A stretch of 64,000 bases of DNA from Macrostomum lignano (GCA_002269645.1 NIVC01002029.1:62001-126000), one strand, 5' to 3'. Shown: positions 37,301 to 43,300, counted from the first letter of the stretch. Program-made: numbers and translations. The notes: a model not told the origin generated them from the letters alone.

Positions 37301-40300
37301 GTCTTATATACTAAATCTCTAATCTATGTCTGTCCGTGTAAAACGCTCCACAAACTGCAATTCATGACCAATTTTGATCGCGTTTTCGCCAAAAAATTGC
37401 AACTGAGCCAAGGATTGTATGGTTAACATTTCTTTTATCTGCTTCAATGCTAAAGGTCTTAAATATTCAAAAAACTGTATTTTCCCTATCTAATTAGTGT
37501 ATTTTTCTCGCAGTGAGAGCTCGAAAAATAATAATACGTCTATGGCCAAAGACTAAACTTTAATTTCTTGAGCTGATGCTACCAGCTATAATAATTAAAT
37601 ATTCGCAATCTTCAGAGTATGCACGAGGGAGATAAATTATGCGTATAATAAATTAATTTTCATTTATTTGTAGCTTGTTCCTGGACTAATCGCTAAATGC
37701 AGACGATGCAAAATCTTCGTTGTATTGATGTGCTAAACACTGCCAATTTCTATCGGAAATTGATTATATAGTGAGCCGTACAATGTTGAGTAAATTTCTA
37801 CATTATTGAAAGCATCACTGTAGCTTCCTGAGGACACTGAGGGGCCAGCAAAGAGGAAAACTGCAGACTGCTCAGGCGATAAATGAGAATTGTTGTAGAC
37901 TGCAAACGAAATGACCGCAGGTTGCTGAGGAGAACTGCAGATTGTCGAAGGGATCATTCATTTAGACTGCAAAGTTGAAAAACGAAAAACTGCTGAGGTT
38001 GTTCCTCCAGACTTATAAGTGTATAGCTTCAAACTGCCGATGGGATAACTATCTACAGAGTTTTAGTGGATAATAACTGTGAATGATTAAGCGCAAGTTT
38101 TTGAGGGGATAACTGCAGACTGCTGAGTGAATTATTGTAGTTTGCTGATGTTAATGAAAGTTGTAGACGTCAAAGTGGATAACTGCAGGCTGTTATTAGT
38201 ATGACTGCAGTCTGTTTTGCGGGATTAGAAGGAATAGCTAATTTCAAGAATTACTGAATTGCTGTAGACAAGCAATAACAAGCATAGGATGTATAGCTTC
38301 AAACTGCCGATGGGATAACTATCTACAGAGTTTTAGTGGATAATACCTGTGAATGATTAAGCGCAAGTTTTTGAGGGGATAACTGCAGACTGCTGAGCGA
38401 ATTATTGTAGTTTGCTGATGTTCATGAAAGTTGTAGACGTCAAAGTGTATAACTGCAGGCTGTTATTAGTGTGACTGCATTCTGTTTTGCGGGATTAGAA
38501 GAGAAGCTACAAGCTACAAGAATTACTGAATTACTGTAGACAAGCAATAACAGGCATAGGCTAAGCAGATGGTCGGCAATTGGAGTCTGCATTGAAGCAG
38601 CAAATTTATCTGGCTTACTGGGGGAATTGTTGAGATGTCAAGGCTTACTGGGGTAATTGCTGCAATCTCGAGGCTTACTGGACTGGGAGAATTGCGTAGA
38701 TGCCATGGCTCGAGTTTAATTGCTGCGATGTCAAGGCTTACTGGGGGGATTTCTGAGATGTCAAGGCTTAATGGGGTAATTGCTGCGATGTCGAGGCTTA
38801 CTGGGGAAATTTCTGAGATGTCAAGGCTTACTGGGCTGGGATAATTGCGTAGATGCCAAGGCTCGACTTCGCGTTGCTGCGATGTAAAGGCTTACTGGGG
38901 AAATTGCTGAGATGTCATCAAGGCTTATGGCATATTGAGCTCCTGCTGCGGACCAGAATATGCCCAGGCCAATGACGATATGCCCTAAGAGTTTGTGCTT
39001 GAAAGGATAAGTACTATTTGCTGAATGAGAAAGGGTTTTGGGCTGATGAAGGAAACTTTGGCTGGTGAAGGTTTTGATTCATGGCAACTGGGGGAATTGT
39101 TGAGTTGTCAAGGCTTACTGGGGGAATTGCTGCGACTTCAAGGCTTACTGGGGGAATTTCTGAGATTTCAAGGCTTACTCGGGGAATTACTGAGATTTCA
39201 AGGCTTACTGGGGGGAATTGCTGAGATGTCAAGGCTTACTGGGGGAATTACTGAGATGTCAAGGCTTACTGGGGAAATTATTGAGATGTCATCAAGGCTT
39301 ATGGCATATTGAGCTCCTGCTGCGGACCAGAATACGCCCAGGCCAATGACGATATGCACTAAGAGTTTGTGCTTGAAAGGATAAGTACTATTTGCTGAAT
39401 GAGAAAGGGTTTTGGGCTGATGAAGGAAACTTTGGCTGGTGAAGGTTTTGATTCATGGCAATTTATTTTTGCCAAAAATGAGAAAAAGTAAGTTTTGATT
39501 AATGGATTTTGAATAATAAGTAAGGTTTTTACTCATTGGCCAAAATAAAAACCACTTGGCGTCATTCTTGCGCCCCCAACGGGGGCTTAAATTGCTAGTC
39601 TTATATACTAAAGTTGAGTTTGTTTGTTTGTTTGTTTGCTTGTAACAGAAAATCTTGCGAACGGAATGACCGATTTTCTCCGTTTTTGCACCATTAGATG
39701 GCAAATTGTCCGGAATCGGTACACGTATTTTTAATAAGCTATCCAAATTAAAGAGGCCTCTCAATTGTCAGAAAACAGGTTTTTGCCCATCTCGCTAATG
39801 TATTTTTTCGGCAGTGAGAGCTTGCAAACGGTTTTGGCCATAGATTATAATGCTAATAGCTGTAGGCTGCTTGGTTTTTATGTAGCCCACTGCTTCCTTT
39901 CCTTCTTTCTTTTCTTTGGTTTTTGAACCCTCTAATAGTGCTTTATCTATTTAGCCCCACTGTATGATGGTGCGCCGTGGCGCAAGCCATTTGAAGAGAA
40001 GCCGTGACGCAAAGAAAAGACGACTGGCCGAGTCTGCTGGAGAGCGCGATGCCCGTCTGGAAGAGCAGCGGCGGCGAGACGCCGAGCGCCGCGCTGTTGA
40101 AGACGAGGCTGAGCGGTTTGCCCGTCTGGAGGAACAGCGGCAGAGACAGGCTGAATGTCGCGTTGCTGAAGACGAGGCTGAGCGGATTGCCCGTCTGGAG
40201 GAACAGCGGCAGAGACAGGCTGAGTGTCGCGTTGCTGAAGACGAGGCTGAGCGGATTGCCCGTCTGGAGGAACAGCGGCAGAGCAGGCTTTGTTTCGCGC

Positions 40301-43300
40301 TGCTGAAGACGAGGCTGAGCGGATTGCCCGTCTGGAGGAACAGCGGCAGAGACAGGCTGAGTTTCGCGCTGCTGAGGACGAGGCTGAGCGGATTACCCGT
40401 CTGGAAGAGCAGCGGCAGAGACAGGCTGATTGTCGGCGCGGTGAATCTGTCACCAGGTTACCTTGTGTCGAATCTATTGTGCCCTTTAGTCAGTTGCAGG
40501 TCAATACCACCATTGGCGATGGCAACTGCTTTTTTCATGCCGTATGCGACCAGCTACGTGGCACACCGCATGAAACCGATGCCGCTACCCTTCGGCACGA
40601 GTTGGCCTGTCGTGCAGTTGAACTTTTGCCACAGTTGGTCGCGAATGGCATCATCGCGCCTGATTGCGCCGATGAGATTGCGAATTCCTCCTTTCAGGAA
40701 GGGGTTTATATTTCAGACGAAGTGGCAGCTCTATTTAGTAGCTGCTTTGACATGGACCTGGTGATTTACCAGTCCAATGGTAATGTGCTGCAATATTTCA
40801 AGTGTGACAAGCAGCCTCCCAATGCCACTGTGCGTGTGCTCTTGAGTCACGAGCACTACGAGTCGCTCAGACTTCGACCGTCTCTGCAAGCTTCTTCAGG
40901 TGCAGAGTGTCCCAGGCCAATGGCAAGCGGCTCAAAGGCAGTGCCAGTTGACATCCACAGCTCACTGGACTGTGGGCGACACCCTAGAGGTTCAAGGAGC
41001 CCAAGTGCAAGAATATGGCAATGATATTTCGCTAAATTGTACCAGGGCCAATGTTCGCCAATATCCTGCCAATGACTCTGACTTGACGGAGTGGTTTGAA
41101 AGGGCTCAGTCGAGTCAGCAAATCTTTGAGCCAGTCCAAAAGACCCAATCGACTGCGAGACCGCCTGATAACCAGGAAGTTCGGAGGGACACATTTGTGT
41201 TCCAGTGCTCTCCTGAAATGTTCGCATCATTCCGCAATGTACAAATAATGCAAGTACGCTGCGGAGACGACGAAATTATTTTTTCGCGAGACAAACGCGG
41301 AGGCGACGTGTCACTGGGCCAAATGGAGTCTACTCCAATCGCTGGACCGTCGCATTCTACTATCAATGAGGACGATTAAAAATAATTGTCATTGATAAAG
41401 CAACACAGTCAATCTCTGGTGTTGGGTGTTGCAGCTGCTAAGTTTAATAACAATAAAGTGCACACTGTCAATCTCCGGGGTTGGGTGTTGCAGAAGCAGC
41501 AATGTTATTCTGATAATAATTCTGATTGATTGTTGATACTAAAAAAATAATACAATAAACGCTGTATGCATCTGATTCAGTAAAAAATAAGAGAATAATA
41601 CAAAAAAAATAACTATTGTTTTCAAATAAATAATATAATCAATTCATTGCTCTGAACCTGAGCATCTCCCCGAAGGGGGGCTAAAATTGCTATAATTGTC
41701 TATAGCCAACATTCTCCTTCTTACTTTTCGATCCTCTATTCTGTAATGGAGATAGCTTGAGTTCTTTCTTTCTGTGGTGTATTGTAGTGTAATAAAATAT
41801 TAATGACTAAATGAATGAGACCTATGAATAAGAATGAATATAAAAATTGATTTATGAATATTCATATTGAATTATTGAGATATTGAATTATAGATACGGT
41901 GAATAAGAGAGATTATTATGAATATTAGTTAATCAATTGCGATAAATAACTGTACTAAATACTCTCCCCGAAGGGGGGTCAACTATTGCTAGTCTTATAT
42001 ACTAAATCTCTAATCTATGTCTGTCTGTCTGTCCGTGTAAAACGCTCTACACATTGCAATTTCGATCGCGTTTTCACCAAAAAGTTGCAACTCAACCAAG
42101 GATTGTATGGTTCAAAATTTCTTTTATCTGCTTCACTTCTAAAGGTCTTAAATATTCAAAAAACTGTATTTTCCCTATCTAATTAGTGTATTTTTCTCGC
42201 AGTGAGAGCTCGAAAAATAATAATACGTCTATGGCCATAGACTAAACTTTAACTTCTTGAGCTGATGCTACGAGCTATAAATAATTAAATTATTCGCAAG
42301 CTTCAGAGTATGCACGTGGGAGATAAAAATATATTAAATTAATTTTCATTTATTTTTAGCTTGTGCCTGGACTAATTGCTAAATTGCAGACAATGCAAAA
42401 TCTTCGTTGCATTGATGTGCAAAAGACTGCCAATATCTATCGAAAATTGATTATATAATGAGCCGTACAATTATTGAAAGGATCATTGCAGACTGCTGAG
42501 AATGAGAATTGTTGTAGACTGCAAATGGAATGACCGCAGGTTGCTGAGGAGAACTGCAGATTGTCGAAGGGATCATTCATTTAGACTGCAAAGTTGAAAA
42601 ACGAAAAACTGCTGAGGTTGTTCCTCAAGACTTATGAGTGTATAGCTGCAAACTTCCGATGGGATAACTATCTACAGAGTTTTAGTGGATAATAACTGTG
42701 AATGATTAATTGTAAGTTTATTGAGGGGATAACTGCAGACTGCTGAATGAATTATTGTAGTTTGCTGATGTTAATGAAAGTTGTAGACGGCAAAGTGGAT
42801 AACTGCAGGCTGTTATTAGTATGACTGCAGTCTGTTTTGCGGGATTAGAAGGAATAGCTCATTTCAAGAATTACTGAATTACTGTAGACAGGCAATAACA
42901 AGCATAGGCTAAGCAGAAGGTCGGCAGTTCGAGTCTGCATTGAAGCAGCAAATTTATCTTCGTGACCTGTAACAAAAACATTTAAATTTAAAAATACTTT
43001 TGCTGGGGCTGTGTTAAGCGTCTAGAGTTGTGCTAATCTGCTGTAAGTGTTAATTTGCAGAGGGTATTAGTAATTTGGGTGAGCAGTGCTAATCAGTGAG
43101 CCGTACAATGCTGAGCGAATTTCTAGATTGATCAAAGATCATTTGCAGTTTGCTGAGGATACTGAGGGGCCAGCCGAGAGAATGACTGCAGACTGCTGAG
43201 GTTATAAATGAGAGTTATTAAGGAAACTCTTGCTGACTGCAAATGGATTGACTGTAGACTTCTGAGGGGAACTGCAGATTGTCAAAGAGATCGTTCATGA

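Follow-up and report, generated by a model that had tools for sequence, protein, structure and literature searches.

A Helitron copy from Macrostomum lignano that is probably an internal deletion derivative retaining the STPR-like and OTU front end of its transposase

Introduction

Helitrons are rolling-circle transposons whose Rep nuclease nicks the element termini and whose Pif1-type helicase unwinds the DNA, an RPA-like protein being thought to coat the single strand. In the canonical Helitrons (HLE1) of the HELIANO survey, an OTU domain can be found upstream of the gene for the Rep-helicase transposase (RepHel), together with STPRs, and RPA can be found downstream of it (Li et al., Nucleic Acids Research 2024, PMC11417382). 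The present analysis deals with a 64,000-nucleotide stretch of DNA from the flatworm Macrostomum lignano (GCA_002269645.1, NIVC01002029.1:62001-126000), referred to below as the window and numbered from its first letter, and with a 2,394-bp element at positions 39599-41992 of its plus strand. An earlier note on this DNA, made from the sequence alone, had described the region 39964-41024 as a stand-alone cargo gene of a Helitron, in which STPR-like repeats are fused to an OTU protease. As detailed below, the element is very probably a canonical Helitron copy of recent origin, made non-autonomous by an internal deletion that left the front end of the transposase.

Ubiquitin-protease domains have also been described in Helentrons (HLE2), either as OTU or as tegument-like (VTD) deubiquitinase domains (Thomas et al., 2014, PMC4067079; Erven et al., 2022, PMC9741609). 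The tegument-like VTD domains of zebrafish Helitrons have been proven biochemically to be deubiquitinases, while transposon OTU domains have never been assayed (Erven et al., 2022). For the OTU and VTD domains of Helentrons, the roles proposed are the shielding of transposition proteins from degradation, chromatin signaling and polyprotein cleavage (Thomas et al., 2014; Erven et al., 2022). The HELIANO survey has no mention of flatworms in its main text, and a literature search returned no paper on Macrostomum Helitrons of this kind.

The Element and Its Probable Internal Deletion

The element is delimited on both sides by CTAG/TCTTATATACTAAA junctions (39595-39612 and 41989-42006; the slash marks the join). 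It has the 5' TC and the 3' CTRR of Helitron termini, since it starts with TCTTATATACTAAA at 39599 and ends with TTGCTAG at 41992. What it derives from is indicated by L001 and L006, two short-read contigs from public sequencing runs, with which it is collinear (L001 91-1278; L006 1-634 together with 6418-7249). L006 is a single 7,249-bp contig on which the OTU exon is followed, on the same strand, by Rep, the helicase and an RPA-like gene of two exons. Between its positions 634 and 6418, its open reading frames (ORFs) match Helitron_like_N, PIF1, Pif1_2B and an RPA-like protein. The window tracks L001 as far as 40964 and then diverges; its positions 40331-40964 correspond to L006 1-634 (99.7% identity) and its positions 40962-41793 to L006 6418-7249 (99.4% identity). 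In other words, the window element is L006 minus positions 635-6420, i.e., 5,786 bp of a parent of about 8.2 kb. The earlier note had advised looking for intact copies and for an autonomous partner with the same termini; L001 and L006 answer to this description in their internal sequence, and the M. lignano loci L004 and L005 have nearly the same termini.

At the junction, a three-way comparison reads ...CACAGCTCA/TGTGCC in L001, ...GGTGAATCA/CTGGACTG in L002 and ...CACAGCTCACTGGACTG in the window. The exon-1 part and the RPA-like part share a 3-bp TCA microhomology (40962-40964), at which the two parts of L006 abut. The deletion lies 346 nt before the end of exon 1, i.e., its splice donor, and it has removed the last 346 nt of this exon, Rep and the helicase in full, and 1.4 OB folds from the beginning of the RPA-like gene. 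A deletion of 5,786 bp between two TCA triplets would have produced the window copy, and the OTU frame would then run 19 codons into out-of-frame RPA sequence and stop. These 19 codons and the stop, which read the RPA-like sequence in the wrong frame, occupy 40965-41024.

In its proper frame, the remainder of the RPA-like (OB-fold) gene comprises the C-terminal 137 codons and the stop (40966-41379). The translation of 40966-41376 is 94% identical to P0002 and 50% identical to P0003, both of which match REPA_OB_2; since only residue 43 onward is retained, the OB fold is truncated. The product of L006 6293-6835 matches REPA_OB_2 with 28.7 bits (cutoff 27), and P0002 does so with 28.6 bits. Near the end of this ORF, L002 (around 780-815) differs from the window (41261-41379) by an indel that is present neither in the window nor in L006 and that therefore gives P0002 a different C-terminal tail. 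The reading of the window and L006 fits the 50%-identical P0003 better than that of L002 does.

The deletion copy is, as judged by sequence identity, very young. Only two differences from L006 are found in the 634-bp part, both of them synonymous G-to-A changes (40544 and 40733), and five in the 832-bp part; because there are so few, the copy has no evolutionary history of its own. A comparison of dN/dS between copies was abandoned, with only these two synonymous differences in the shared OTU part and with the M. lignano ortholog (57% amino acid identity) being too diverged.

No Rep or helicase sequence was found elsewhere in the window by tblastn with the 1,656-residue parental polyprotein, of which only residues 1-265 were recovered. 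By this search the element lacks the RepHel gene of its own that an autonomous Helitron would have, and on these two points, i.e., a Helitron that is non-autonomous and an ORF with no Rep or helicase beside it, the earlier note was right. As both termini are kept, the copy could still be moved in trans.

Internal deletions flanked by microhomology are the usual source of non-autonomous DNA transposons. This speaks against an artefact of assembly, in which either the join at 40962-40964 or the repeats and frameshift described below would be mis-assembled and the real locus would be full-length. The window is indeed packed with tandem repeats and head-to-tail Helitron units, and the number of coding repeats is not the same in the window and in L001. 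However, the sequence on both sides of the junction is unique and only 3 bp are shared, on which assemblers do not usually join, and the chance that such an artefact explains the locus is very slim.

The Reading Frame at 39964 and Its Repeats

The ATG at 39964 starts a frame that runs through a tandem array, and a stop codon stands at 41022-41024. Its first part (39964-40041, plus strand) encodes the start and a basic N-terminal stretch and corresponds to the beginning of RepHel exon 1, the start being identical to that at L001 484. The window N-terminus is 51% identical over 73 residues (E=2e-15) to that encoded at the M. lignano locus L005. The array itself was detected by Tandem Repeats Finder at 40042-40435 (period 69 nt, 5.7 copies, 90% matches, score 604), and six units can be placed in register at 40042-40454, each of 69 nt and thus 23 amino acids except the fourth, which has 68 nt. 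In this fourth unit one A is missing after 40283 (AGAGACAGG becoming AGAGCAGG), outside any homopolymer and adjoined by two substitutions. With the missing base (40283-40284), the protein passes from the frame of 39964 to that listed from 40290. It was considered whether another frameshift or an intron might connect the frame of 40290 with that of 40900, and this was rejected, the frame change at 40964 being the deletion junction.

By definition, STPRs repeat in tandem with a period of exactly 23 residues (Yu et al., 2016, PMC4856987), and such a period is what the six units display. They are predicted to form one long helix (pLDDT, the predicted local distance difference test, above 90 in a single-sequence AlphaFold run). 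In the STPR register, Glu1, Arg6, Arg9 and Leu10 are retained, with Asp in place of the conserved Thr/Ser2. Repeats 1-4 contain 5-7 Lys and Arg vs. 7-9 Asp and Glu, i.e., a net charge of -2 where STPRs are expected to be basic. The Pfam STPRs model (PF21107) gave no match to the window repeats up to E=10, and a phmmer search of the repeats against PDB did not recover FMBP-1 but only other repetitive helical proteins at E>=0.05. The homologous N-terminus from M. lignano (L005 9683-10039), in contrast, passes the Pfam STPRs model (31.8 bits, cutoff 27, E=2e-7). The designation STPR-like used in the earlier note can be kept; the agreement with STPRs is only partial at the level of sequence, and the window repeats are best named divergent STPR-like. 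In the intact transposase, they may contact AT-rich DNA, STPRs being major-groove binders of such DNA.

The number of repeats varies. Six 69-nt units are present in the window as opposed to two and a degenerate first unit in L001 (562-749), and the contigs L006, L007 and L008 all break within the repeats. Either a true variation in copy number or a collapse in short-read assembly can account for this difference.

As regards its coding potential, the earlier note had credited the ORF with a start, a stop and polyA signals of its own, and all of these are present. However, the ATG is the start of RepHel exon 1, the stop results from the deletion junction, and the polyA-like signals that follow the OTU frame sit in the tail of the RPA-like gene. 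The appearance of a tidy accessory gene is due to a deletion scar, in which the stop and the polyA signals that seem to be its own come from the tail of another gene. With the 1-bp loss in the fourth repeat, the frame would be broken even further upstream; considering this frameshift together with the stop at 41022, the window copy codes for no working protein. It is a non-coding remnant, an ordinary deletion derivative.

A stand-alone gene for a DNA-tethered deubiquitinase, with the 1-bp gap as a sequencing error, is thus very unlikely, even though restoring one base yields a frame of 353 amino acids (39964-41021) with the whole OTU fold and its catalytic motifs, and even though the copy is young and retains the 5' leader of the transposase. 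The last 19 codons and the stop of this frame are out-of-frame RPA-like sequence brought in by the deletion, the identity of 99.4-99.7% to the autonomous element leaves no room for an evolutionary history of its own, and no second copy exists within the window. In addition, none of three window ORFs, one of which spans the junction, has its exact product on record in a 153-billion-gene index, and the gap is adjoined by two substitutions and does not lie in a homopolymer. Above all, the ORF corresponds to RepHel exon 1 in L001, L006 and the gene model P0004. The earlier note had itself named a truncated N-terminus of a RepHel polyprotein as the outcome that would speak against a cargo gene, and this is what was found. 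There is nevertheless a slight chance that the missing base is an assembly error and that a free 353-residue STPR-like and OTU protein is made from the transposase promoter and acts in trans. If so, it might supply deubiquitinase activity or compete with the full-length transposase at the element ends, in the manner of the KP derivatives considered below.

The OTU Domain

The OTU cysteine-protease domain lies at 40482-40898 (plus strand), in the frame of 40290. It contains GDGNC at 40515-40529, in which the catalytic Cys of the DGNC motif is encoded at 40527-40529, and HEHYE at 40848-40862, in which the catalytic His of the HYE motif is encoded at 40854-40856. The ATG, the six 23-residue repeats, the Cys and His motifs and the 1-bp gap after 40283 are thus all present in 39964-41024 as the earlier note had described them.

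With Pfam alone, the assignment is marginal. The OTU model (PF02338) reaches 16.9 bits on the window vs. a gathering score of 23.3 (E=0.0095) and covers only the Cys motif, and the intact protein P0001 gave no Pfam OTU match at E<=0.01. The question is settled by the agreement of phmmer, a chain of homologs, AlphaFold and Foldseek. In a phmmer search against PDB sequences, OTUD3 came first (E=6e-4; aligned residues 21-146, both motifs included), followed by viral OTU proteases; the window GDGNCFF and EHYES line up with GDGNCLF and EHYDS of OTUD3. A word-indexed homolog search returned P0001 as the only OTU relative, and more relatives were obtained by an exhaustive comparison with 1.84 billion representative proteins by phmmer. 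Among its 23 matches, the closer ones are 35-67% identical and share the motifs, and the distant matches P0011-P0014 (phmmer E=3e-6 to 2e-5) pass the Pfam OTU model at 1e-10 to 4e-15. In an alignment of 17 sequences (A1), the G, D, G, N, and C positions are at least 90% conserved.

Structure prediction points in the same direction. An AlphaFold run on P0001 without an alignment was unusable for the OTU domain (pLDDT <50), with only the repeat helix being confident, and was replaced by a run with alignment A1, which gave a pLDDT of 84.8 and a predicted template modeling (TM) score, pTM, of 0.75 for the OTU domain. With this model, all 50 PDB matches listed by Foldseek are OTU domains (probability 1.00), and these listed matches include OTUD5 (E=2e-8), OTUD3 (TM-score 0.74, target-normalized), nairovirus OTUs, yeast Otu2 and OTUD1. 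The window domain is accordingly predicted by the model to have the OTU fold with a DGNC Cys loop and an HY His motif, as the earlier note had proposed from the motifs.

Two of the OTU relatives, P0008 and P0015 (27-37% identity), share another downstream region, LPECLQNPF.D.FL..R.EF, which in P0015 is followed by CxxC motifs. From their sequence, they may belong to another Helitron-like lineage.

Predicted Modular Architecture of the Parental Transposase

The protein P0001, which is encoded on contig L001, is 100% identical to the window across the OTU part. The ORFs that follow it on L001 match Helitron_like_N, PIF1 and Pif1_2B. Exon 1 ends there at a GTGAGT donor, and after a 74-nt intron ending in CACAG it is joined in frame to a CxxC-containing region of the kind typical of Helitron transposases, followed by Rep. 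The remaining ORFs are connected through five more introns (72-115 nt), in which the donors are GTGAGT or GTGAAT and the acceptors AG. The spliced product is a single ORF of 1,656 amino acids with one terminal stop, in which Helitron_like_N (E=5e-52) and PIF1 (E=3e-64) are matched and HVH and YxxxY motifs can be seen in the translation.

This fusion is independently supported by the NCBI gene model P0004 of M. lignano (GCA_002269645.1), which has a 57%-identical OTU domain joined to Helitron_like_N. A helicase match from this species bears the name BOX15_Mlig024103g1. The M. lignano loci L004 and L005 are full elements with the exon order of L001 and with CTAG/TCCTATATACTAAA junctions.

In the intact element, the ATG corresponding to 39964 would therefore not begin a separate gene but would open the first of seven exons, which together encode one protein of about 1,650 amino acids. 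From the N-terminus onward, this protein would comprise a basic stretch, the 23-residue helical STPR-like repeats, the OTU cysteine protease, the CxxC region, the HUH Rep nuclease and the Pif1 helicase, and a separate gene for an RPA-like protein with two OB folds would lie downstream of RepHel on the same strand. The parent appears to be an autonomous Helitron of about 8.2 kb that is apparently active, its copies being about 99.5% identical. It would follow the general Helitron scheme of Rep nicking, helicase unwinding and RPA-like coating. Judged from these sequences, the notion that the repeats and the OTU domain belong to the spliced transposase in this flatworm Helitron lineage, with no separate accessory ORF, is better supported than a free STPR-OTU protein acting in trans.

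Concerning the function of the attached domain, the most likely role by analogy is that of a transposase-attached deubiquitinase. It may keep the transposase, or the proteins that work with it, from being removed via ubiquitin, or else act on chromatin or repair signaling at the element. Alternatively, the OTU domain may act as a self-cleaving protease that cuts the polyprotein in cis.

This shared order also bears on the origin of the OTU domain. Helitrons are known for capturing genes, and OTU in Helitron-like elements is treated as an ancient capture (Li et al., 2024), so that it can be asked whether this very non-autonomous element recently took its OTU domain, with or without the repeats, from a host deubiquitinase gene. 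However, autonomous elements both of this genome group and of M. lignano have the order repeats-OTU-Rep as well, with 47-57% amino acid identity, which dates any capture to before these elements and assigns it to the transposase gene and not to this copy. Moreover, a search of 1.8 billion representative proteins found no host OTU gene outside Helitrons that exceeds 90% identity to 40482-40898. A recent capture by this copy is extremely unlikely.

Several points weigh against the derivation of the window element from such a parent by deletion. The frameshift and the junction are known from the assembled sequence alone, and the link between parent and derivative relies on an identity of about 99.5% to contigs from other sequencing runs and not on pedigree. 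The splicing of the parental gene is predicted from consensus sites, the frame and one annotated gene model, the OTU score in Pfam is below its gathering threshold, and the repeat count of two in L001 vs. six in the window may reflect a collapse in short-read contigs. Taking these points into account, it is still highly probable that 39599-41992 is a young deletion copy of a canonical Helitron. The part that may be worth keeping is the parental element, with its STPR-like helical array and an intact-looking OTU domain in one spliced frame with Rep and the helicase. The family offers a compact and well-delimited construct for asking if rolling-circle transposases need an attached deubiquitinase.

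Termini, Neighboring Units and Surroundings

The 5' terminus TCTTATATACTAAA (39599-39612, plus strand) is common to the neighboring non-autonomous units and has one mismatch vs. the M. lignano autonomous element. It is followed by a 5' leader (39613-39963), the presumed promoter region of the transposase. Compared with L001 91-483, this leader shows 90% identity and a single indel of about 31 nt. At the other end, the 3' untranslated tail (41380-41992) contains an internal hairpin followed by CTAT (41668-41693), and then a terminal hairpin (41966-41978) followed by TTGCTAG (41986-41992). The terminal hairpin, CCCCGAAGGGG, stands 10 nt ahead of CTAG, and CCCCCAACGGGGG is found at the matching position in other units. 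The 3' hairpins are short, and their modest fold energies (-3.7 to -6.6 kcal/mol) are not clearly better than those of shuffled sequences; the hairpin assignment is therefore based on the conserved position and on compensated stems across the units. The tail thus displays two signals resembling a 3' end, namely the internal hairpin with TTGCTAT, one base off CTAG, and, 299 bp further on, the terminal hairpin with TTGCTAG. L006 also reads through the first of them, and this looks like a terminator bypass that added a 3' extension.

The element is the third unit (E3) of an array of eight head-to-tail Helitron units, E1-E8, that extends from 33842 to 56112 on the plus strand, and it is the only one derived from the autonomous element. 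Units E1, E2 and E4-E7 form one non-autonomous family of 2.2-3.5 kb with internal minisatellites, from which E3 and E8 differ. About the first 14 nt and the hairpin-TTGCTAG end are common to all eight units, and the autonomous family is therefore a plausible mobilizer of the neighboring units. The window contains 5 occurrences of the Helitron junction motif, where 0.08 would be expected. Canonical Helitrons insert between a host A and T without target-site duplication; both flanks of E3 are other Helitron units, with CTAG/TC on each side, so that no target site of the host can be seen there, and CTAG/T is found only at the right edge of the array.

At the joins of the array, hairpin-TTGCTAG is followed, directly or within 13-22 nt, by TC(T/C)TATATACTAAA. 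A heterogeneous array with exact CTAG/TC joins is unlike the product of simple insertion between A and T, and points to read-through of the terminator, to template switching or to units recombining with one another. The head-to-tail habit is also seen in the M. lignano loci, with junctions at 8694 and 17787 in L005. Arrays of a 30-bp minisatellite, GGCTTACTGGGGGAATTGCTGAGATGTCAA, are found within a 374-bp higher-order duplication in E2 (38612-39301), and similarly in E1 and E4-E7; these arrays account for the size differences among the non-autonomous units.

Elsewhere in the window, much of the sequence consists of GC-rich minisatellites, at 5759-6412, 11987-14393, 22868-23323, 24901-26264, 29295-29984, 32326-32892, and 58596-62358. 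They give rise to long spurious ORFs in several frames, and the GC skew swings strongly. The region resembles chromatin that is dense in repeats and poor in genes. An ORF at 9005-9610 (plus strand) matches the Pfam MORN repeat (E=6.5e-10) and runs into low-complexity sequence; a host gene with MORN repeats probably has its first exon here.

Comparison with Known Systems

Internally deleted non-autonomous DNA transposons can keep the N-terminus of their transposase, e.g., the KP derivatives of the P element. As in KP, the deletion in the window copy is internal and flanked by microhomology and has spared the termini as well as the 5' portion of the transposase ORF. In contrast to KP, which makes a working repressor, the frame of the window copy is additionally broken by a frameshift, and no product is evidenced.

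Concerning the individual domains, the OTU domain shares its fold with OTUD3, OTUD5 and the nairovirus L-protein OTU proteases (TM-scores of 0.6-0.74), and the DGNC Cys loop and HY motif align. The identity to these cellular and viral enzymes is only 16-22%, and unlike them the window domain is embedded in a transposase. Where OTUD3 has an Asp two positions after the catalytic His, the window has a Glu (HYE). The repeats resemble the STPR domain of Bombyx FMBP-1 by their strict 23-residue period, their all-helical prediction and the four positions that are kept (Yu et al., 2016). Besides the Asp at position 2, they differ from it by an Arg for Tyr16, a Cys or Phe for Arg20, and a negative instead of a basic net charge in repeats 1-4.

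The autonomous Helitron of M. lignano (L004, L005, P0004) has the same domain order and exon layout as the parental element, with 57-88% amino acid identity depending on the domain. It begins with TCCTATATACTAAA, ends with CTAG and is also found as head-to-tail units. It differs by an intron of about 280 nt that splits the STPR exon from the OTU exon (L005 9683-10856), whereas the window exon is continuous, and by repeats that pass the Pfam STPRs model, which those of the window do not. No RPA-like gene was found by tblastn downstream of the helicase in L004 or L005, where tandem repeats fill that space.

With Helentrons (HLE2), the family shares a papain-fold ubiquitin-protease domain inside the gene of a rolling-circle transposase, with the catalytic residues kept, but Helentrons have an AP endonuclease and other termini (Thomas et al., 2014; Erven et al., 2022). 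The resemblance to the canonical HLE1 elements extends to the TC...CTAG termini with a 3' hairpin, Helitron_like_N and PIF1, an OTU domain upstream and an RPA-like gene downstream, and, in the M. lignano member, STPRs (Li et al., 2024). OTU, STPRs and RPA in canonical Helitrons being known already from that survey, the family is a useful example and no surprise. While the survey places these domains in ORFs apart from RepHel, the repeats and the OTU domain are joined here to Rep by a short consensus intron, and their splicing into the transposase frame represents a modest refinement of the HLE1 architecture given there (Li et al., 2024).

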